The notes beneath the pieces are model-generated. The model searched no databases, was not told where the DNA came from, and saw only the letters and a program-made list of their open reading frames with translations. Position numbers and translations under genes: made by a program. Positions 2,385 to 25,345 of a stretch of 26,946 bases of DNA are shown piece by piece. Origin of the DNA: Ginkgo biloba (taxonomy: Eukaryota > Plantae > Ginkgophyta); contig JANKJI020000002.1 of NCBI GenBank assembly GCA_024626585.2, forward strand, positions 204,010,551-204,037,496, written 5' to 3'. Positions within the stretch are counted from its first letter, which is position 1, and each line of letters opens with the position of its first letter.

Positions 2385-3160
2385 ATAGATTTATTGATGA
2401 GATAGAGTGTGACATGGTGCCGCTAGATGTATGTTTAGTCATGCTTGGAAGTCCTTATTTATGGTACAGAGAAGTTGGATAAGGTCTCCGAATTAGTAAA
2501 GATTGGTTAAGGATAGCCAAGGCTATGCAAGTAGAGCTAGTTTTTGTAATAATGTCAGCTTAAGCCAAGAGGCTTGTCAATGCTTCGAGAATGTCCACGG
2601 AGGTGCTCACAACAAATGAGAATGGTGCTCAAAGGACAATTGTTCAAAATGCGAAGTAGTAAGGACAACTTTATAACATGCTACAAAAGTATGCGTATGT
2701 CTTCTAGGAACCTAAAGGAAAGCCTCTTAAGAGAATCATTGAACATAATACAAGGATTTAACAAGGGGTAATACTCCTAAATTTTATTCTTTATAGGAAC
2801 TTAGTCTTAGAGAATGAGGAAATCAAGAAGCAACTCCTCGAATCATTGGATAAAGGCCATATAAAGCCCAACACTTAACCTTGTAGCCTTTCAATTGTCT
2901 TATTGTGTAAAGCCCAACACTTCCTTGTGGCTTTTCAATTGTCTTAGTCCCCAAGAAGGATTGTACTTGGAGTATGTGTGGGCTACAGAGCTCTTGATAA
3001 GATCGCAATGGAGAACATGTATATGCTTCCTGAGATAGAGGACTTGATTGATCAACTCTAGGAGGCTAACTTCTTCAATAGATAGACCTTAGGTCGGGAT
3101 ACCACCAAGCCAGAATCAAAGAGTAAGACACACACAAGACTCTCTTTGAAACATGGGAGG
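2385..3160 (+). pseudogene. Ty3/Gypsy pol remnant, 5' part (aspartic protease C-terminal region, linker, N-terminal half of reverse transcriptase)
   Basis: Translates with stops and frameshifts to FIDEIECDMVPLDVCLVMLGSPYLW, AKRLVNAS, ENEEIKKQLLE..DKGHI, IVLVPKKDCTW, LPEIEDLIDQL and IDLRSGYHQARI..DTHKTLF. These match typical Gypsy protease and RT motifs (DLRSGYHQ, KTAF). Confidence 0.92.
2862..2946 (+). repeat. Short tandem duplication (46-bp period) inside the Gypsy RT
   Basis: taaagcccaacactt..ccttgt.gc.tttcaattgtctta occurs at 2862 and again at 2908. Confidence 0.85.
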
Positions 3161-5054
3161 TGTTATGCCCCCGATGTTTACCAATTCAATGATGAGAAGT
3201 GAGCCCAAGAAGCCCTTAAGGAATGTTTGCCATATAGCTTTAAATGATGTCTCTAAGATTAAGCTTAATGATGATGCTAGATTAGTTATATTGTAGATGC
3301 TGGCTCAACCTCATGATGGGGTAATTAAGAAAGAGAAAATGGGTAAAGAGAGAGCCAAGAGGTTATCTCAACCTAAGGTGCCCCACTTTCAAAGAGTAAT
3401 TGGAGTGCAATTAACCACAAAGGGTTTCCTAGGGTTTGGGGTAGCCTTGGGAATGAGCTTAGCTCTATGAGGCGGTCAAATGCTTCTCCTCATTGTATAA
3501 ATACGGTGTAAGGGGGCTGAGATAAATCCTAAGCATGATTTGATATCTTTTCTATGACCTTATATTGAGGGCGTTTTATTTCTAAGGTATATTCTCTGCA
3601 TTCTAGCTATCGTTTTGCTCCAAGAGAAGTTGTTNNNNNNNNNNNNNNNNNNNNNNNNNNNNNNNNNNNNNNNNNNNNNNNNNNNNNNNNNNNNNNNNNN
3701 NNNNNNNNNNNNNNNNNNNNNNNNNNNNNNNNNNNNNNNNNNNNNNNNNNNNNNNNNNNNNNNNNNNNNNNNNNNNNNNNNNNNNNNNNNNNNNNNNNNG
3801 TCACATATTTTCTAGAGTTGGCGACTTGATTCCACATTGGTAGTGTGCATTAAGTTTGACAATGGGACCCTGACTATGCATTAAGCTTGGTTATAGACTG
3901 CACCTACTAACAGATTTTGCACCTCCACTGCTTCTAACCTTTGCATGAAGGGAGCTACATTTTATGCGGTAGAAGTATGATGTTTTTGATTAAGGAAGCT
4001 TCTATCATCTTCAAATACTCCAATTCTATCGAGCAAGTCCCTCTTTAAGGCATTCATTGTGGGCTTCACTCTTTTACTGCACTTTTCTGTTATACTGTTG
4101 TTGTAGTCGTGCATTTCTAGAATGGCCTAAAATTTGAATTTATGTTTGCATGTGCATTATTATGGGTCTATAAACCCTAGGACTTTAGATTTAGACTTCT
4201 TATAGTGAAGTGCCCTTAGTCAAANNNNNNNNNNNNNNNNTTTATGGTGGCTTTTGCTTATGATTGGATTTTAAGGTTTGTTGGTCTTCTCTATTGTCCT
4301 TTTTTTAGATGTCAAACCTTAGAGCCTGGTTCTTGGCGTCCTATATTAGCATGGTAACCATTGAGGGGGAATCTTATTATCCTTTGATGTGCATTTGGTC
4401 TAGTTAGCGATAATACTAGCATTAGCCCATGTGTGAGCATTGTGTGACTTTATGTCGTAGGGCTACTAATAATGAGGGTAGGGATAGCACCCTAATTACC
4501 CTTAGGGATGGTATGGTGTTGTGGGCTATGCTGGCACCCATAGTGGGCCATTCTTTTTAGCTGATTGACATTATTTGTGCATTTATGTATTGCTCACATT
4601 TATCCTTATGTGGTTAGTATGCTATATGCATGAACTGCTAGTGGGGAGGGCATCTCGTTAGGGTGATGGCCCTAGTGCTAAAGAAGGGATTGGAATAGAC
4701 CTACGCCTGGCCATCTTGGTAGCTACAAGGGGTGGAATCAAATGGGGAGGCCATTTGGCGTTGATGGTCAACATTTATGGATCAGAGGTTTGTTTTGATA
4801 GTTGCATAAGCCCCAATAGGTGATCCTCATAGTCAATAGTGGTTGTTAGTGCATTTTGCCAAGACCTTTCCTTACGTCTAGCAGTGTAACCTTTGAGTCT
4901 TGTATATGTGGATTCTTTAGAGTTAAGTGATTTAATATAAATGAACATTTTTCCTTGTTTATTTATTATGATTACATTGCACTTTGGTTATTCATGTATC
5001 TTTATAAGCAATTGATTTAGAATAGTATATAGGACTAAGGGCGAGACTATTACA
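3161..5054 (+). mobile_element. Probable solo LTR (~1.9 kb including N gaps) inserted into the Gypsy RT
   Basis: Starts TGTTA and ends TTACA. The RT reading stops at FETWEG before 3161 and resumes at (Q)(G)LFE(W)TVMPF after 5054. Flanks GGAGG/ATAGG look like a degenerate 5-bp target-site duplication (TSD). No coding motifs were seen inside. Confidence 0.75.
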
Positions 5055-5757
5055 ATAGGTTCTTTTTGAATAGACGGTCATGCCATTTCGACTGACCAAT
5101 GCATCGGCAACCTTCATGAGGTTAATGAATGAAGTGCTTAGACCTTATTTATATTCATTGGTCATTGTCTATTTGGATGATATTCTAATATACAGAAAGA
5201 CTTGAAAGGAGCATTTGGAACATAATGAGATAGTGCCTTAAGCATTAGCAAATTAGTAGTTGAATGCAAACCTCAAGAAATGCCCAATTGCAATAAATGA
5301 GCTAATCTACCTAGTTTCAAGGTAGATGGTGTAGGGCTCGTGATAGAACCTACTAAGACAGAGTTGTCCTGAATTAGCCAACATTCAAGAATTTCCACAA
5401 GCTTATAAACTTCACAGGATTGGTTAAAAATATTGTAGCAAGCTATTCAAAGATAACCTTACCCTTAAATGCATTAGCAAGGGGAAATACAACTTTCAAT
5501 TGGGTAGAGAGACAATAGAGAGGTTTTGAGGGGCTTAACTATAGAATAAAAAATTACCCCTTTTCTATAATCTCTTTATATAAGGTTAACTTTTAAGATA
5601 AAATTTGATGCATCAGGGTATACCTTAAGAGTGGTCTTAGTCCAATATGACAAGTTAATTACTCATCATTCAAAAACCATTTTAGAAGTTCTATAAGTAC
5701 TCCACTTATGATAAGGCCCAACATAGTATCATGATTTTATTAGGGACCTAGTACCAG
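5055..5757 (+). pseudogene. Ty3/Gypsy pol remnant, continuation (RT catalytic core, RNase H, possible start of integrase core after a deletion)
   Basis: [36 protein letters not shown] (YLDD at 5170-5181), then DASGYTLRVVLVQYDKLITHHSKT..STYDK (RNase H). An SI-M-DFIRDL-like stretch near 5725-5750 resembles integrase SMDF. Confidence 0.92.
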
Positions 5758-6877: not shown

Positions 6878-7315
6878 CACTTGGTCCGACTTGGGACAAT
6901 ACAAGCCATAGCCCATGGGAGCATAAATGACTTGGAGTCATAGGGCTATTGACAATGCGGGTAGGGCTAGCACTTTGATAACTCGTAGTGATGACATGGT
7001 GCTGTGAGGTATGTTAGCACTCATAGTGGGTCGCTCTTCTCAATTGAATTGCATTGTTTTTTGTGCATGTTTATTGCTCACACTATGTATGTAGTCAATA
7101 TGCTTGTATGCATCAATTGTTACTAGGGGGGATATTTCATAGGGAGATGATCGTAGTGCCANNNNNNNNNNNNNNNNNNNNNNNNNNNNNNNNNNNNNNN
7201 TTTAATATATACAAATATTTTATTTATTTATTCATGCATTATACGTTGATGATTCATGTTTTCTATAAGCAATTAATATATTTAGCATTCAGGGCTAAGA
7301 GACAGGGCTGTTACA
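6878..7315 (+). mobile_element. 3' portion of a second LTR of the same family as 3161-5054
   Basis: 6878-6975 aligns by eye with 4391-4490 (ttggtc..tagcccat..gagcat..tgactt..tagggcta..gggtaggg.tagcac). Its end (ataagcaatt..gctaagagacagggctgttaca) matches the 5054 end (ataagcaatt..actaagggcgagactattaca). The 5' part is probably inside the 6051-6877 N gap. Confidence 0.75.
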
Positions 7316-7432: not shown

Positions 7433-7756
7433 GTCTTTTCTTTGAAGTAGAATATCCTTTAACTCCTCTTGCATGGCCTGATTTCTTCTAAGACTACTGA
7501 CCTTAATTGACCAGCTGAGCTGCATTAAACTGGGCTGTGACCTTTCATTTCTGATGATCCTGCACACCTTAATTGGCAGTGTGATTTGTCTACACACTTT
7601 CAGAGTTTTAAGGGACTAGATGAAAAAAGAATTGATGCTATGCTTGTGTCTTTCCTCATTGAACATGTCCTCTATTTGGAACTAAAAATTTAAGTACAGA
7701 ATTTCTTGTTTCATTGTTGTGTCAAAAATTTCTCTGATCAAACCAAAAATGAACAG

Positions 7757-8054
7757 GCTTGCTGTTCCTGCTGAAAGTTTAATTCAATCATATGAAAACT
7801 TTCTCCAATGTTTGTCTTCTCGTAATAGGAGGAAACATAAACAAGCAAAGGCAGTAGCTCTATCTGGAAGCGTTCCTTTGAAGTGCAACGAAAATAATTA
7901 CTTCAAAAACCACACAGAACCAGGCATCAAAGAAGTTGAAAAGAAGAGGGGTAGTTACTCAAACGAAGACTCTGAAACAAATTGTAATTCGTTCTCAAGT
8001 TGTGAGGCTGGAAGAAGAAATAATGTGGGTGTTGGAGAAGGCTCAACGGTGTAA
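7757..8054 (+). CDS. BMF3: Internal exon of a Bub1/Mad3-family (BMF3/MAD3.2-like) gene: last helix of the TPR (Mad3_BUB1_I) domain plus start of the linker; 3' boundary uncertain
   Basis: Acceptor gaacag|G at 7756/7757, then LAVPAESLIQSYENFLQCLSSRNRRKHKQ. This resembles the TPR end of plant BMF3 as I recall it (LAEP.DELQKSY.QF..RMERHKKKK). The frame stays open to a stop at 8052-8054; no strong donor site was identified. Confidence 0.62.
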
Positions 8055-9202
8055 ACCCATGGAGAAGCATACGATAGAAGGAAACCTTGTATGTTGTTGC
8101 TACAAAGTTGTGATTACTTGGAGAACGATCTTTGGTGGTAGCATTTCTCTTGCATTCAGGTTAAAAGGAGGTAGTAGGAGCGGGAGTCGTAGAACGTTTA
8201 GAAGATTATAACGAATGGTTGTTGTGTGATATGCTGACGGTTTTGGAACAGAGTCATCGCGAATCAGTTGTGAGATACCAGTGGTTGTTGTTGAAGCTTA
8301 GATAAAGTCGCCATGATGGTATCAGAGGTGAGCTATTGCACTGCAGTGAATGCTTAGGACAAAGGTGAATTACCAANNNNNNNNNNNNNNNNNNNNNNNN
8401 NNNNNNNNNNNNNNNNNNNNNNNNNNNNNNNNNNNNNNNNNNNNNNNNNNNNNNNNNNNNNNNNNNNNNNNNNNNNATTTATAAAAAAATCAAAGAGGTA
8501 AGAAGAATCCTTCTTGTATTGTTGAAGGTTGCCACATTGGCAAAGTTGGCCAATCACAAGAATTTAGAAAAGATGGGATAGAGTGACAAATTCTTAAGCA
8601 AAATCCAACTCTTTACATGCTAAACAAGTGTGTAGATCATCAAGATATGACTCATCGTGGAAAAAATCATGTTCTCGAAAGAACAAGTTAATATTGTATT
8701 TTTGCGTGCACACATAGATAAAGACCATGTAAGTGCACGCTAAAGGGGTGTGTACTAATGTGGTAGATGATACAAGGATGTGTAGAAACATGGTTTTGAA
8801 AAAAACTATACAAAAATAAGAAAATATTTAGAGCAGTTGATGAAAAAATCTCAAAGCTTGAATACCTACAAACAATCAAGGAGATGGATTCCATTTATTA
8901 ATAAAGAACGTGTCTATACAATTAAAGGGGGTGTGTGCCTTGGGCACTAATAACCAAAATATTTATAAAATTTTATTATCTTCTAAAAGTCATATATGAT
9001 CTCCTGATACATTAATAGACTAGTCCCCAAAATCTTGATTATAGTAATTATCAAAAAAAGAAGAAGCCATAAAAACCAGAGTGTTGATGGAGAATGATTG
9101 CAAGAGTCAACCGAAGAGGGCATCAATGACATAATCCTAGAGTTAGACAGTGAGAAAACAACCTAGGGATTAGACAAGGTTATAGAAGAAGGTGAAGGCA
9201 CC

Positions 9203-11222
9203 ATGGAAAACCATGTTGGTAGTAGTGGAGATGCTGGCGATGATAAAGCAGGCACTGAAGTCCGAGGAGAACGAGAAGAAGGTGTAAAAAGTGAAGAACA
9301 GTTGTGTCAAGGTTCTTATTCTACAGCCAGTTCATCTTCCAAGTTTTGCAGTGAAGAAACAATCATCATACACAAATTTGTAGATTCTGCAATTGTTGGA
9401 GATACTGAAGAAGTAGAGGATGTTCACCATCATGGTCTGGTTGAACCTACCATTATTACAAAGGAAGCCATGGCAGATATAAACGATATGTTTGGGAAGC
9501 CACTGCATTTTGATAATTTAAAACTGAGAAATCAATCACGGAGAACTGAAACTATTAAGCAACCTGTGGAAAGTTTTCAGATATTGGCTGATGAAGATTT
9601 GGAAGAACAAGGTTCAAAGCAGCTACGTTCTCTGTCCAATGCAAATGATGACGATGATTCTTCTATTTGGTCTGTCAGAGATTTGCAGGTATTTGTAGAT
9701 GCTAGTCTTATCCATAAGTCCTCAGAGAAACTTCCAAAAGCAACATCTGAAGATTTTGCTCATGTCCAGGGCTTGCAAACATTGGCTGATCAAAGTTTTA
9801 AACGGAGCCAACAAGAGACATCTATAGAGTGCTCTATACCAGTCAAAGATTTTCAAGCTGGACAGGGAATAGAAGAGAGAGAATGGAACAGATGGATTAG
9901 CTCAGATGAACTAAATATTCCTTTGCAGTTGATAGAAGGCTCTTATCCTACAGCCAGTTTACCTTCCAAGTTCTGCGGTGAAGATACAATCATCATACGT
10001 AAATTTGCAGATTCTGCTAGTGTCGGTGATACCCAAGAAGTGGAGGATGCTTGTCATCATGGTCTGGTTGACCCTACTATTAATACAAGGGAAGCTATGG
10101 CAGCCATAAATGATATGTTTGGGAAGCCACTGCATTTTGACAAGTTAAAAACAAGAAATCGACCACCAAGAACTGAAATTATTAAGCAACCTGTTGATGT
10201 CTTTCAGATAATGGCTGATGAAGATTTGGAAGAACGAGGTCCAATGCAGTTACATCATCTGTCCAATACATTGGAGGAACATGATAACTCTGTTCTGTTT
10301 GACAAAGATTTTCAAGTGTTTGTAGATGAAAATCTTAGCAATGAGTCCGCCAGACAAGTTCCAACAAATTCCTATTCATCTGGGGATCTTGCACCTACCC
10401 AGGGCTTGCAAATGCTAGCTGATGAGCATTTCGAAGGGATCCTACAGAAGACACCCATAAAGTGCAATACATTCAAAGATTTGGATCTCTCTTCCAAACC
10501 AGTTGAAGCTATTCAAAATGGCCCAGCCATAGAAGAGAGAGAGTTGAATGGCAAAAGGTGCACTATAGAGGGTGTACAAGGGCAGGGAAACTTTATAGAA
10601 GGTCACTGTTTTGCAGACAGTTTGCTATCCAAATTTTGCAGTGACGATACTGTTGTTATCCGCAAATTAGTAGATTCTGCTATTACTGGTGATACTGAAG
10701 AAGTGGAGGCTGCTTGCCATCATGGTCTGGTTGATCCAACCATCAATACAAAAGAAGCTATAGCAGACATAAATGATATGTTTTGGAAGCCATTGCAGTT
10801 TGGCAATTTGAAAAGAAGTCGCCCCCCAAGAACTGAAACAATTAAGAAACCTTCTGAGAGTTTTCATATATTGGCTGATGAAGACATAGAAAACCAAGGC
10901 TCGCAGCAACAGTGTCTTTTGTCCAATACGNNNNNNNNNNATTCATCCCATCTCTTCTCTGCCATTTGTTGATAACTTTCAAATATTTGTGGATGAAAAT
11001 GTTCATTCTCAGTCCACAAAGGAAGATTTAGAAAAATCCCATTTTTCAGAGGATGTTAAACCCATCCCAGCACTAACTAATGAGAATTTCAGGGATATGG
11101 AAGAGAAATTACCGATGCTCTGTAATAGATCTAAAGATGAGGGTCTCTCCTGTGTGCCAGTTGAAGGTTTCCAGATCTTTGTTGATGAACAATTTCAAGA
11201 TCAAGAATCAAAGGATCAGTAA
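9203..11222 (+). CDS. BMF3: C-terminal coding block of a BMF3/MAD3.2-like spindle assembly checkpoint protein with three CD1+ABBA repeat modules and no kinase domain; joins ORFs 9203-10972 and 10989-11222 across a 10-N gap
   Basis: Three copies of (D/E)T(I/V)(I/V)I.K.(V/A)DSA..GDT.EVE...HHGLV(D/E)PTI(N/I)T(K/R)EA(M/I)A.INDMF.KPL, the plant BMF3 internal repeat. Its core matches Bub1 CD1 (human SPTVHTKEALGFIMNMFQAP). FQVFVDE and FQIFVDE ABBA motifs are present. There are ~575 stop-free codons before the gap, in a background where TE ORFs are riddled with stops. After the gap the frame starting at 10941 (IHPISSLPFVDNFQIFVDEN) is colinear with repeat 2. The ATG at 9203 may be internal rather than the true start. 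Confidence 0.88.
9308..11189 (+). repeat. Intragenic tandem triplication; units start at 9308, 9935 and 10598 (periods 627 and 663 bp, both in frame)
   Basis: Shared nucleotide blocks in all three units, e.g. tccaa(g/a)tt(t/c)tgc, catcatggtctggttga, gatatgttt.ggaagcca, agaactgaaa and tggctgatgaaga. Confidence 0.95.
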
Positions 11223-11988
11223 CCACAGTCTACTGCATTACAGAACAAGGCTCCAATTCTCTGATTAGTAGAGGACTTAGTAGTGCCTGTAAGGCACTGA
11301 ATACTCTGAAGACTTTTCCTAAATTGGTGGCCAGCTTAAATATTTGAAAATGTACAGTTTCAAGAAAAGGCTTGTACGAGCAGTCTATAGAGTGCACTAT
11401 AGCTGAAGATAAACGCATGATCATGGAATCCAAGGCTAGAATTTACATCAGCATATGTACTGTGAATACAATAGTGCAGAAAGATATGCTATCTGATTTA
11501 TTCATGGATCTAGATCCCTATCAATCGCACCTAAATGATCTTTGTAAGCATACTTACACAACAGCAAGTAATGCTTCTGATGGGAGGAATTTTGTGTAGG
11601 TCCTGCTAATGACAAACATTATAAATGTGTTGTAGAATCAAAGGAGAGGATTTGTGCCTTAATGTGTTTTACACCAGAAATTTAACTTCATAGATGTAAA
11701 AGATTTGGTGAGTGACTGGTGATGATATATGTTTGTGAAATGTGACTATCATAAGATACTGTATGCCTATTGAATTCCATGCTTGTTTTTTGTTTGCTAA
11801 TCTGAATTTACACATCCCTCGTTTCTTGAACTCGCTGCATTATTGTCAGAACAATCAATCCGGTCAATGAACATAGTATAAGGATCATATTGTGGCATTA
11901 GACTATATTTATTATGAACCTTTTTTTTCCCAATGGTGATGGCATTTNNNNNNNNNNNNNNNNNNNNNNNNNNNNNNNNNNNNNNNNN

Positions 11989-13721
11989 GCTCGATTTCGT
12001 TTCGGATTTTAGAGGAATGAGTTAAAGCCATTTAGGAAAAACAGGAGACAGCTGAAATTAGGAGAAAACAAGAAATTGAATCCTAGTATTATAAGAAACA
12101 AAACTGTCGAAGGAGGTTGGGAAAGTTGCAGCATAAATTGGCAGCAAGTGAAATCAGCAGCAATTCGTGCCAGAGGGAGTTCGGCAGAATTAATAGTTCT
12201 CTAGAGTGAAAAGGAGGCAGGGGAAGTGGTGCAGGCAATCATTGGTGGAGCGGATCATTGGATTTGTATTCAATTTGGCACTACTGTTTAGTGTATATGC
12301 CCCTAACAACACATCAGATTGAGTCGCCTTATTGGAATACCTTCTAAAGTATTTGAAGTTATTCCCATGAAATGAATTGTGCGATTATGTTGGGGTGCTT
12401 CAACTTCATGGAGTCCCAAGATGGGTTTAACCCCATAAATTCAAAATGCACAAGGGAAAATGAGAAGTATGTCTTTGAAGAGCTAAAGACAACACTGGAC
12501 CTAGACGAACAAAGTTGGCAAGGCTTGATCAAGCACACATGGTTCAATGGATAAAAGGGAGCAGATATAGTGCTAAGGAGATTCATCTGGGCATATTTTA
12601 TATAGACACAATGGATTCATCTCAACAGATTATATATCATGTAATACCTCCAATTATATGTCAGATCACAAGCCAGTATTATTCGATATCTCAATTGGTT
12701 TACAATGTAAGAAGCACAAGTTGCGGCCTTTCAAATGGTATATTATTAAAATCAACACTGGTAATTGACTTCAAAAAGCAGGAAGTAAACCACAAATTTG
12801 AAGAATCCAAACTGGTGGGGGTAAAATCGGTCGCTGTGACGAAGGAATGAAATCGATAATAAAGCAAGTACAGAAGGAAATACATACATCAGTCTGGCAA
12901 TCAAGAGAGGAACTGGAGCCACAAATGGCATGCCTCGAAATCAATCCCGTAGATACGAGGGAGCATGAAAGGCTTACAGAAGCATTGGAGGAAAATAATC
13001 AGGCAATAGAACAAATACCAAATGATTCCACATTGGGTCCCTATGGAATCTACAAGGAATTCTATGAGCTCGTACTCCTTCCCCTAGTATGGTATACAGA
13101 TCATATGCGAGGAATTCGAACATTCGTCCATGAACTGCAGTCACATAACCTTTTACTATTTAGCCCCAAAAGGAAAAAGTCAGATACAAAGTAATGAATC
13201 GGAGACCGATTGCAGTGAGTAATGTGTCCTATGAAATTATTGCAGAAAAATCATTTGCCCAAATATAAACAGTGGACAATACAAGGGGCAAAATGCCTTC
13301 ACAAAAGGAAGGCGAGTTTAGGACAATATTACAGTGGCGAGTGAGTTAATATGCATTCAATCAGAGAAAAACAATAGAAATATGGCGTATAAAGCGGATA
13401 CGCTGAACGCCTTTGATAGGAGCAGGTGGCCATTCATCAATCGCCACATTACCAGCGTAGAAGTTTCCAACAAATCTCACTGGATGGGCGGCAGTTTGTC
13501 TAAGAACAACCAATATTGCAATATTGGTAAACAGGAAGCAAACATGTTTTTTTCGAACCAGAAGAGATGCATGCTAAGGATGGTCACTATCTCTAGTACT
13601 ATATACTCTCTCTAGATACTTCAATGCTTGGAAGAAGCAGGTCTACTCATGGGAATCTTATTTAGAAAGGATATAAAAAGATACTTCACATGATATGGAT
13701 CAAGTAATGGGGTCCATTGCT
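11989..13721 (+). mobile_element. Degenerate L1-type LINE ORF2 (APE endonuclease and reverse transcriptase), running into an N gap
   Basis: Endonuclease-like SVYAPN, MLGCFN (GDFN), HTWFNG and SDHKPV. RT-like IPNDSTLGPYG..KEFY (KAPGPDG), NRRPIAVSNVSYEIIAEK (WRPISLLNVSYKII), QNAF.KGR, KADTLNAFDRSRWPFI (KLDFEKAYDRV.W.F) and C*GWSLSLVLY (RQGCPLSPLLY). Many stops and frameshifts. Confidence 0.88.
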
Positions 13722-17919: not shown

Positions 17920-19470
17920 GAAAAGAACAACTTGATCTTCAACCTCACACCTTTCTTCCTCTATCTTCTACGTAATTGCTTGCTTAGAACGTTTTGCAAC
18001 TTATGGTGTTGGGGTAGAAATTGGTTCTTCTTGTTCACTCCAAGAGCAATCTTGATGATCATCATAATCAATCCAAAATAAAGCACCTCCTTGTCTTGCC
18101 TTTTTTCCATCTTATTAAATTTCTATCTATGATATCTAGTTAAATGTAGACCATATTAACATATTTACCCTTCCTCCATGTAGTGAAAAATATGAAGCAT
18201 GGATTGTACATATAAGTTGAGTGTTGTTACATAAACACAAAATAAAAAATAAGATATATAAGTTAGTTGTAGGGTGCAGGGATAAGCTTTATTGTGACTC
18301 CAGTGCTAGTGCTTACCCTTGTAGGGGGATGATTAGTACTTGGAGCATTGCTCCCTGAAGAAAGTTTATCAACAATTTCTTTTAGCTCTTTAATAATTTG
18401 TTCCTCCATTTTTCAAATCTTATCTTTTGTTTCCATTGAATTAGTTGGAACATCTAACAATTCTCTTGTCATTTCTTCAACCTCCTTTTTAAAGGCTTTT
18501 AATTCTTGCCATCCGTCTTGAAACTTAGGTCATGACTAGTTTGGACTCCTACATTTACCACACTTCTTCCTGGAATTTAATTGGCTCATTGGAAAGCTAG
18601 GTTTGCTTCAATTCTTGCTCTAGCGATGCCACCCTCTCCTTCAAATGTTTGTTTTCTTGGGCTAGCTGGTCATTTGCTATCATGAGGTTAGTGGTGCATA
18701 TATCGAAAAGAACAAATGCATCTTCAACCTCCCACTTCTCTTCCTCTGTCTTCTACACAATGATTTTCCAAGAAGGTTCTAAAACTTGTGAGTTGGGGGA
18801 AATAATTGGTTCTTCTTGTTCAACTCCAAGCATAGTGTTAATGATCATTTGGATCAATCCAAGATGAAGCACCTCTTGTCCTGCCTTTCTTCCATCTTAT
18901 TAAATTTCTAACCCAGTAAAATGTAGGCCATATTAACATATTCACGCTTCCTCCATGTAGTGAGAAATATGAAGTATGGATTGTATACATAAGTTGAGTG
19001 TTGTTACATGAATACATAATTGAAAATAAGATATGTAAGTTAGTTATAAGGTGCATGGATAAGCTTTATTGTGACTCCATTACTAATGCTTATTGACGGT
19101 CCCAAGGTTACACCCGGAGCTAATGGGGATAAGGCTAACTGGTCTGCATACTCTAGAGTGGGCAATGGTGTCACGATAGGGTCAATAGTGAGGGGCCAAA
19201 TGGCCCTCCGTTTCAATAGGGGTGGTTCCCTTTAAGGAGCACAAAACACTGGAAATAAAAGATAAAAGGGGCAAAGAGCNNNNNNNNNNNNNNNNNNNNN
19301 NNNNNNNNNNNNNNNNNNNNNNNNNNNNNNNNNNNNNNNNNNNNNNNNNNNNNNNNNNNNNNNNNNNNNNNNNNNNNNNAGAGAGGGAGACTCGGCGCGA
19401 TTTAACCACATCAAAAATTGCAGTCAATAATGCTTGATCCTGTAGCAGGACGATTAGGAAATAAATTGTC
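17920..19470. repeat. Diverged tandem duplication (~785-bp offset): 17920-18340 versus 18706-19090 plus 19430-19460
   Basis: Shared blocks: aattggttcttcttgttc, ccatcttattaaatttcta, ccatattaacatatt, cttcctccatgtagtga, ataagttgagtgttgttacat and ggataagctttattgtgactcca. Confidence 0.92.
19091..19429. mobile_element. Solo-LTR-like insertion with a perfect 5-bp TSD (ATGCT) and TATTGAC...GTCAATA termini; true length unknown because of an internal N gap
   Basis: ATGCT at 19086-19090 and 19430-19434, and a 7-bp terminal inverted repeat. The flanks rejoin to match the uninterrupted paralogous copy at ~18305-18340. Confidence 0.85.

Positions 19471-20806: not shown

Positions 20807-20858
<52 letters not shown>
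20807..20858. repeat. (CA)n microsatellite next to an N gap
   Basis: Perfect CA run seen directly. Confidence 0.98.
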
Positions 20859-23329: not shown

Positions 23330-25199
23330 CTCTAAAAAATGTGGCTAGATATTGTTGGTCTTTGTAAGAAATGAATGTGGAGAAAAGAGAGAAGAGAAAA
23401 TATATTAATGGTCGATAGGTGACCAAAAAGTGGTGAATGGAACTACAATAAAAGATACAAATGTTACATGCTAGGGGCATGTTTTCAACAACTCTAGACC
23501 CAAGGCTAAGAGCTAAAAGAAAAACCTCTATTAAAGGAAAACAAACTCTAACAAAAGGGTGTGACAAGTGATAAGCAAAAGGTACATCTAAAGGGAGTGT
23601 GAGGGTAATCTTAGGAGGGATAATCCCTTCATGCTTTGATCCAGGGTCTATATAAATACAACACATCAAAATAAGTCTTTGGAATTTGCCAATATTGAGA
23701 GATCTATACGTCATTGACAATAACAAATTTGCTCAAGGCTTGTTAAATCATCTCCTCTATGGTCTAATTGTTAATGGTTCTCAGTCTAGTACTAAATATT
23801 TGTCTAACCCCATCCCTATTTTGATCTCTCTCTCTCTCTCCTAGCATCCGAAAGCGATGTTCCCTCATTTTGGTATAGATAAGCTAGTGATGAGGCCATT
23901 TCTCCTGGATTTGGATTTGAGTCGCTCAGTTCTATAGGGGCCTCTCTTGGCATGTCTGGAGAGTCTCCTATCAGGTTGTGTATGAGGTTGATAGCTAGTN
24001 NNNNNNNNNNNNNNNNNNNNNNNNNCCGATCTCTTGCTGAGGGCTATGTGTACATGCTAGGCATATTTGCCCTATTACTGGGGTCACAAAATGAAAGAAA
24101 GAGGTGACGTTTTGGACTTTATTCCCCCGTTATGTAGTGCTCTCCTAGAGGTGGCATCTGTGGAGAAAGAGCTTTCTGAGAAAGAGAGCCACACATTGCT
24201 AGTCCTTGTCAGAGATAAGAATGGACAGGGACCCTCTTGCATCCTTGAAAATGTAGTAGTTCCTTCCTTTGATCTCATAAAAGACAAGACAATGAAAGAT
24301 GAAGTGTTTGCCCCTTTGTACCTCCAATGAGCAAAGATTGCATATGCATTGATCTTTGGGCACATGGTGCCCTCCTTTTATTTGAAGTTGGTGGAGTGGA
24401 ACCTAAAGTGCCTAATAGGGAACTGCATGCTATGTGACATGTGCAAACATAGATAACTTAGAGGATCGATGTTGTCCTCAGAGATATGAAGTGGTTGCTA
24501 TAGAAGGCCATCTTGGGGTTAAGAGCCCTAGATGAGGTCCATAAGGACTAAATGCAAGCCCTATAAATGCCCCCCCCCTCGAATATGCTCATTAATCTCC
24601 TCCTTAGTAAGCAAGACATTAGGTGCATCAAGAGAGTATCTAAAAGGTGGTAATCTAGAAATTGAGATCCCAATCATCTAAAGTAGGACAAAGGCCTGAC
24701 TATACGAATCACATCTATGCTTGGTGGTCTCCTTGTTGGCCACCATCTTTGAAGAGCATAAGGCCAAATAAGGGTATTGTACCCTCGCTATGTTAGCATT
24801 TGCCATAACTTGGACCCTATGTAGGTATGTGCAAATCCAAAATTTGGTGTCTAGGTAAAGTGGGTTAGCTCCAAATTTGGCTAGAGCAATACTTTGAGGT
24901 ACCACTCATTTGTAACAATTAATCTTGGATACCATTAGTGTGTGGGCTCTCTCCACTCATGCTTAATCTCTTGTAGATAATCCCAGTTTCCAAATCTTAA
25001 AACCATGGAGAGTGGTTGGCTTCACTAAGGTGTCAAATAGCAACCATTCAATAGGGATATCCTAAAATTGGAGGTGGAAGCACTACCTTTTGAGAGGGGA
25101 AAGGGAAGCATATCCCATCACTACTAGGCACATCGTAGGACTAGACAACTAGACACCAAGATATGTCTAAGAAGAAATCACATCCATTATTTGACCACC

Positions 25200-25345
25200 T
25201 CATAGCACCAAAACATCTCTTGAGGGTTCTTAGAGTGTTATCCCTACCCTCATTGTAAGTAGCCCTGTGACTTCAAGTCATCAAATGCTCACTGTGGGCT
25301 ATGGCTTGTATCATCCCAAGTCGGACATAATGCATGTAATGCACA
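25200..25345 (-). mobile_element. Inverted fragment of the LTR family seen at 4391-4530 and 6878-6975
   Basis: Reverse complement reads gtccgacttgggatgatacaagccatagcccacagtgagcatttgatgacttgaagtcacagggctacttacaatgagggtagggata, close to 6885-6970. Confidence 0.8.

Follow-up and report, generated by a model that had tools for sequence, protein, structure and literature searches.

A four-unit CD1 and ABBA-like tail in the Ginkgo biloba checkpoint protein BMF3, probably older than the Ginkgo-conifer split

The window, a stretch of 26,946 nucleotides of Ginkgo biloba DNA, very probably holds the second to fourth of the four units in the tail of Ginkgo BMF3, whose array would have originated before the Ginkgo and conifer lineages split and would work by a mechanism of the type described for the human and Arabidopsis proteins. 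Directly visible in the window are units B, C and D of the four (A-D). An earlier note, made from the letters of this DNA, had read the region as a spindle-checkpoint scaffold amplified into three tandem CD1 and ABBA cassettes.

The open frame at 9167-10930 of the forward strand holds three CD1-like motifs at exactly the positions described in that note (Table 1), each preceded by HHGL, with spacings of 209 and 221 codons. The three-unit, in-frame repeat seen there is real, and duplication affected the cassette in its entirety, as had been supposed. No CD1-like match arose in 5000 shuffles of the frame, and strict ABBA-like matches, of which 4 are observed, had a mean of 0.015 in the same shuffles; the ABBA motif is a short degenerate consensus, and all ABBA-like calls reported here are consensus matches only. 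The last of them (11169) is kept at the C-terminus of the conifer orthologues, and the post-gap part of unit D gives a faint Pfam match to Cyclin_N2, the cyclin A APC/C-binding region (E 0.0086, below cut-off). Another faint match below cut-off, of the repeat frame to Plectin, was dismissed as chance. Tandem Repeats Finder did not detect the units, the period being above 500. Duplication of a unit by the assembly is ruled out, since the units differ by about 25% and sit on single contigs.

Table 1. Features of the BMF3 locus in the window (positions count from the first letter of the window).
Feature	Position	Strand	Remarks
Diverged duplicate fragment of the BMF3 coding piece after the TPR exons	7755..8039	+	Not the working exon
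Non-gene DNA	8040..9276		Gap 8377-8476 (100 N), high-copy repeats; depth up to ~3000 in X2
Large terminal coding exon of Ginkgo BMF3, 3' part	9277..11222	+	Gb_15966 residues 335-979 plus stop; single contigs in X2, X10, X20
Unit B (second of four)	9320..9946	+	Plant-specific leader ending HHGL, CD1, ABBA-like motifs, linker; 209 aa
CD1 of unit B	9446..9502	+	E at human S459 position, T at T461 position
ABBA-like motifs of unit B	9575..9793	+	9575, 9683, weaker near 9773; consensus match only
Unit C (third of four)	9947..10609	+	221 aa
CD1 of unit C	10073..10129	+	Only confident predicted helix of unit C
ABBA-like motifs of unit C	10202..10426	+	10202, 10310, weaker near 10406
Unit D (fourth, C-terminal)	10610..11219	+	
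CD1 of unit D	10736..10792	+	
ABBA-like motifs of unit D	10862..11189	+	10862, 10977, 11169
Assembly gap and 12 wrong letters after the Ns	10931..10952	+	22 letters stand for 15 (5 codons), in frame
3' untranslated region, at least to 11643	11223..11643	+	RNA-like contig ends: 11568 (X10), 11643 (X20)

The window contains 19 gaps in 27 kb (2946 N), and was compared with contigs and reads from four public runs of four studies. The gap at 10931-10940 is crossed by a DNA contig (X2) and two RNA-like contigs (X20 and X10), each with net 7 letters fewer and with mismatches to the window that continue to 10952. The resulting 15-letter fill agrees with the Ginkgo protein Gb_15966, and past the gap the frame continues to a stop at 11220-11222; as the reads give an in-frame fill, a frameshift or pseudogene at the gap is ruled out. 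Beyond the stop, contigs extend to 11568, 11643 and past 11900. Eight raw RNA reads were recovered at the locus from 6% of run X21, all with the first mate of the pair on the minus strand, as expected for a plus-strand transcript in a stranded library. This evidence, thin as it is (the eight raw reads and two contigs guessed to be RNA), suggests that Ginkgo BMF3 expression is low but real. The 37 in-frame codons at 9167-9277 were rejected as coding, being absent from the transcript contigs.

An exhaustive protein search identified Gb_15966, a 979-aa Ginkgo biloba protein to which the window is identical at 548 of the 551 residues that precede the gap and at all 89 that follow it. The three differences lie at 9314, 9668-9670 and 10710 (S/A, W/R and A/D); all four runs disagree with the letter at 10710, and 9314 is polymorphic among them. 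The remaining strong relatives are all plant Mad3/BUB1 TPR proteins (Mad3_BUB1_I) that contain the same repeats internally. Neither the window nor Gb_15966 includes the TPR exons. In the transcript contigs, codons for the end of the TPR are joined to the exon piece and the four units, and full-length conifer orthologues carry PF08311 (N-terminal TPR); it is from the loose end of the transcript and from these orthologues that a TPR on the same chain is presumed in Ginkgo. As for the other plant paralogues, the C-terminal kinase of BMF1/BUB A (TPR-CDII-kinase) is missing, the frame stopping at 11220-11222 with the 3' UTR after it and neither Gb_15966 nor the full-length Cryptomeria orthologue containing a kinase domain. 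The KEN boxes of BMF2/MAD (KEN1-TPR-ABBA-KEN2-ABBA), like GLEBS patterns, were found neither in Gb_15966, where the search covers the protein that remains without the TPR-bearing N-terminus, nor in the full-length Cryptomeria protein P0196. What is found fits BMF3/BUB B: its sequence relatives, a repeated CD1 (CMI), ABBA-like consensus matches after each CD1, and no kinase, KEN or GLEBS. On this combination the protein is assigned as Ginkgo BMF3, the BUB B of Tromer et al., a kinase-less plant BUB1 paralogue, and the earlier assignment to BMF3 is upheld by the near-identity to Gb_15966 and by the plant Mad3/BUB1 relatives.

Concerning the number of units, Gb_15966 has four complete ones, and contigs X2, X10 and X20 carry a further complete unit (A) 5' of 9277. 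The piece of unit A on these contigs resembles 10696-10797 and 9556-9623, its spacing fits the protein, and from the 7755-like start to 9277 there are 995 letters in X10 for 332 codons in the protein. In the window, 8040-9276 stands where the gene has about 710 letters including unit A, and all three contigs join 9277 to unit A. Hence, the scaffold proposed earlier as three-unit and trivalent is, by the DNA contig, the RNA-like contigs and Gb_15966, a four-unit and tetravalent one. The window makes a four-unit gene look like a three-unit gene, which we flag as an assembly fault, with a private allele as the alternative. The junction between repeat DNA and exon at 9276/9277 is absent from X2, X10 and X20, and all sampled words across it are present in X1. 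The upstream fragment (7755-8039) shows 19 differences and a 6-letter loss relative to the transcript contig and runs into a stop at 8052-8054. More copies resembling 7755-8054 exist in Ginkgo (X2 depth 39-57, against ~17 for single-copy DNA) and share the 6-letter loss after 7841; the six letters end in AG, like an alternative acceptor. The fragment also runs unbroken over two short-intron sites of the conifer gene L002, with the upstream intron tail kept, and may be a partly processed copy.

The CD1 identity of the repeat motif was recovered with a profile. When 66 plant units were combined into a profile and compared with the PDB, the best match was the human BUB1 CD1 peptide in complex with Mad1 (7b1f_C of 7B1F, E 0.0087); a single-sequence PDB search with one unit gave nothing meaningful, the match coming only with the profile. 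The motif file of Tromer 2016 likewise lists the plant motifs and human BUB1 455-481 under one name, CMI (PMC5204127). In 441 of 441 intact HHGL/HQGL plant units, many of them from close relatives, there is a Thr equivalent to human T461 and an Asp or Glu at -2, and all four Ginkgo copies retain the T461-equivalent together with the hydrophobic helix face. In the plant unit profile, conservation of the leader that precedes CD1 is on a par with that of CD1. Fold prediction of unit C yields one confident helix, over CD1 (pLDDT 84), with low values elsewhere, as would fit a disordered chain whose CD1 folds on Mad1 (PMC8391104). Judged by these similarities, the plant motif is a true homologue of Bub1 CD1, and the succession of CD1 and ABBA-like motifs described earlier is confirmed, the former by the profile match and the latter by consensus and shuffles.

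Units were counted in 221 fetched proteins. The usual angiosperm state, seen in 140 of the 221, consists of two full units with a partial copy that is almost always just a C-terminal CD1; in Amborella there are three full units and a terminal copy (four CD1), and Nymphaea and Victoria have two units, a decayed third and a terminal copy. The earlier note gave angiosperm BMF3 two internal repeats; most of the angiosperm BMF3 proteins sampled have three CD1 copies, the third being the C-terminal one, and Amborella has four. In grass BMF3 (P0004-P0093) three to five ABBA-like motifs at ~36-residue spacing lie between the two repeats, a separate ABBA amplification. The conifer-type orthologues recovered number four (Cryptomeria XP_057860576.1, Taxus KI387_037170, P0197 and P0001), no cycad or gnetophyte being among them. 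In Cryptomeria and the conifer-type locus P0197 a decayed first unit precedes three intact ones, Taxus (a partial model) has a decayed unit and two intact ones, and the transcript P0001 has three units. In P0001 (L001 against L002:6170-6952) the whole decayed unit A is missing in frame; splicing is ruled out here, as the skipped part of the related genomic locus is without GT-AG ends, which indicates a deletion. All gymnosperms covered far enough have units B-D intact. Four intact full units occur only in Ginkgo among the sampled species, three or four CD1 being the norm in seed plants; the conifers share the array by position, and the supposition of a Ginkgo-only expansion is rejected. The sampled ferns, lycophytes and bryophytes have one unit, and the fern proteins P0174 (Ceratopteris) and P0175 (Adiantum) combine a TPR, one leader and CD1 unit and several ABBA-like motifs, with no kinase.

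The tree of whole gymnosperm units groups them by position (A 100/99, D 97/97, conifer B 100/99, conifer C 99/99), with weaker placement for Ginkgo B, which joins B at 79/83, and Ginkgo C, which has no firm position. The AU test rejects trees in which the Ginkgo units are constrained to one clade (p-AU 0.0005 for the four units, 0.007 for B-D). The dS values between Ginkgo units (0.46, 0.74 and 0.72, unit D being counted as far as the gap) are comparable in magnitude to those between Ginkgo and conifers for the same unit (0.61, 0.58 and 1.01). By these comparisons the four-unit array is judged to predate the Ginkgo-conifer split, and a Ginkgo-specific expansion or recent homogenisation is ruled out by the positional tree, the AU tests and dS. 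Between window units, dN/dS is 0.22-0.25 in the 52-codon core, from which we infer that the unit cores are under purifying selection; linker dN/dS reaches 0.7-0.9 (B-C linker 0.74). In a wider tree of cores, which left out decayed units and terminal CD1-only copies, the gymnosperm units form one group apart from the angiosperm repeats (93/94, not among the starred groups), hinting at separate expansions in the two groups; one-to-one matches of gymnosperm units to angiosperm IR1/IR2 are not rejected (p-AU 0.07, 0.12).

The architecture, the mechanism and even the four-copy state are already known. BUB B has been described as TPR-[CMI-ABBA]n, with repeated CMI in several lineages and a proposed role as MAD1/CDC20 scaffold (PMC5204127 supplement), and Tromer 2016 counted 3 CD1 in Arabidopsis and rice and 4 in Amborella (PMC5204127). 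Zhang 2018 pointed out that RZZ is absent from plants and that their Bub1-like protein contains CD1 in multiple repeats, and proposed an amplifier role (10.1101/322834); Bub1-4xCD1, built to mimic the plant proteins, shows strong Mad1 recruitment and bypasses Rod/RZZ (10.1101/322834). The suggestion of an undescribed design hence falls, both TPR-[CD1-ABBA]n and the amplifier idea having been published (PMC5204127 supplement, 10.1101/322834). Among the known systems, Arabidopsis BMF3 (MAD3.2, At5g05510) is, like the Ginkgo protein, a kinase-less MadBub paralogue with leader and CD1 units, ABBA-like motifs and an HHGL-x-D/E-P-T core, which come after a TPR (presumed in Ginkgo); it has two full repeats and a C-terminal CD1-only copy in 471 aa, whereas Ginkgo has four full units of ~200-220 aa with two to three ABBA-like motifs each and ends in an ABBA-like motif, not a CD1. 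Amborella BUB B equals Ginkgo in its four CD1 copies (PMC5204127 supplement, and our own count), but these belong to three full short units and a terminal CD1, and the core tree groups its units with the angiosperm repeats, cross-group orthology not being rejected. Conifer BMF3 has the array in the same order, B, C and D matching by position (Ginkgo B and C placed weakly), in a single open frame of genomic DNA in P0197, and differs in that the CD1 of unit A is broken (Cryptomeria, Taxus, P0197) or absent (P0001). Human BUB1 has a homologous CD1 with ABBA downstream; its single CD1 bears the Cdk1 site S459, and a GLEBS motif and a kinase are present. The plant units instead have D/E at that site and a leader specific to plants, and lack both GLEBS and kinase.

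According to Tromer et al., BUB B arose in flowering plants (PMC5204127). The presence of BMF3 in Ginkgo and conifers indicates that it is older, and two fern proteins look like one-unit versions; if P0174 and P0175 are complete and orthologous, BUB B/BMF3 predates seed plants. In the open-access literature we found nothing on gymnosperm BMF3. What is new here is modest, and not a new system: the existence of BMF3 before flowering plants, the four-unit array before the Ginkgo-conifer split and the decay of unit A in conifers. This fills a gap in plant checkpoint history and would not surprise a specialist, but it offers a natural copy-number series (one unit in ferns, two with a terminal CD1 in most angiosperms, three in conifers and four in Ginkgo), i.e. 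ready-made constructs for relating valency to checkpoint strength.

As regards mechanism, in the human protein Cdk1 phosphorylates S459 and thereby primes Mps1 on T461, Mps1 favouring an acidic residue at -2 (PMC5268738). Phosphorylated T461 contacts an arginine (R617) of the Mad1 RLK motif and pS459 forms no contact; the stoichiometry is one CD1 per Mad1 dimer and the affinity micromolar (PMC8391104). Cdc20 is positioned beside Mad1-Mad2 by the ABBA motif (PMC5472792). For Arabidopsis BMF3, binding to MAD1, BUB3.3 and KNL1 and recruitment of CDC20 to unattached kinetochores have been shown (PMC10963012, PMC12526889), MAD1 being bound via a CD1-like domain (PMC12526889) and BUB3.3 via IR1 (196-228) and IR2 (354-387), repeats required for CDC20 recruitment (PMC10963012). 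Each range overlaps one of the Arabidopsis CMI copies, which lie at 204-230 and 363-389 (motif file of PMC5204127), and because of this overlap each Ginkgo unit is likely a BUB3.3 site as well. The overlap connects two literatures, in which we found no cross-citation of it.

By analogy, the best mechanism for Ginkgo BMF3 would be that of a multivalent MAD1/CDC20/BUB3.3 platform, as the earlier note proposed, though tetravalent instead of trivalent. The protein would be located on unattached kinetochores, as the KNL1 binding of Arabidopsis BMF3 suggests, and MPS1 would phosphorylate the T461-equivalent of each CD1, the Asp or Glu two residues before it replacing the Cdk1-primed pS459. The fixed D/E of the intact plant units suggests such built-in priming, an idea we did not find stated in the literature examined. 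Each phospho-CD1 would then become helical upon binding to the RLK motif in a MAD1 dimer, the leader and CD1 repeat would bind BUB3.3 too, and the downstream ABBA-like motifs would hold CDC20 beside MAD1-MAD2, speeding assembly of the MAD2-CDC20 inhibitor. With as many as four sites for MAD1 and BUB3.3 and about ten of the ABBA-like type, the four units would offer higher avidity and load along a disordered chain, and would probably compensate for RZZ, absent in plants. The array itself would have arisen by tandem duplication within one exon in the ancestor of Ginkgo and conifers, the conifers later letting the first unit decay and Ginkgo keeping four.

Other accounts of the locus have to be weighed against this. 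The earlier note read a recent, Ginkgo-specific triplication that created a new trivalent amplifier, and the DNA identity among window units, 73-78%, is indeed still obvious, just as four intact full units were seen in Ginkgo only; yet the units number four and not three, the conifer array has the same order, a Ginkgo-only clade is rejected and dS is as deep as the Ginkgo-conifer split, which makes this reading extremely improbable. Instead of a misassembly, the three-unit form of the window could reflect a truly truncated allele, or a second copy, present in the source sample and broken at 9276/9277. All sampled words of 9200-10930, junction included, are found in run X1, which is possibly the source sample, but single contigs at single-copy depth in X2, X10 and X20 pass 9277 into unit A, and the window itself is gapped 19 times in 27 kb, with incorrect letters next to the 10-N gap, so that we consider a genuine truncated form quite unlikely.

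With respect to function, the repeats might be kept mainly as BUB3.3 docking sites or be split between BUB3.3 and MAD1, copy number then reflecting a division of labour and not simple MAD1 avidity. This is possible, if somewhat unlikely: the mapped BUB3.3 sites overlap CD1 and the Arabidopsis IR1 and IR2 are unequal (PMC10963012), the pre-CD1 leader matches CD1 in conservation and the positional identity of the units is older than the Ginkgo-conifer split, but none of the four Ginkgo CD1 copies has lost the T461-equivalent or the hydrophobic helix face, each Arabidopsis repeat alone still partly binds BUB3.3 (PMC10963012), and such a division is compatible with the main reading. Copy number above two could also be nearly neutral, extra units being spare and gained or lost by unequal crossing-over. 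We find this unlikely in view of a core dN/dS of ~0.2 for all Ginkgo unit pairs and of the preservation of B-D across the gymnosperms sampled far enough, despite the decay of unit A in three conifers and its absence from P0001, the decayed third unit of Nymphaea and Victoria, the two full repeats and terminal CD1 with which most angiosperms manage, and linker dN/dS up to 0.7-0.9. Going beyond the multivalent platform that we favour, the gymnosperm units might form a specialised, non-interchangeable array kept since before the split, in which BUB3.3 and MAD1 compete at overlapping sites, so that several repeats are needed, and the D/E makes MAD1 docking independent of Cdk priming; we put this forward as a speculative and rather doubtful extension, under which Ginkgo would provide a natural four-valent version for relating copy number to checkpoint strength.

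A final point concerns other elements in the window. Broken reverse transcriptase remnants of LTR retroelements lie on the plus strand at 2760-3170 and 5060-5330, with Ty3/gypsy-like motifs on translation, stops and frameshifts, and a broken LINE-like one at 12960-13612, also on the plus strand (faint RVT_1, E 0.088). A dispersed repeat occurs in three copies, one inverted (4409-4678, 6884-7159 and 25197-25326), a 390-letter direct repeat at 17920-18315 and 18705-19092 has 82% identity, and a (CA)26 tract at 20807-20858 adjoins a gap.
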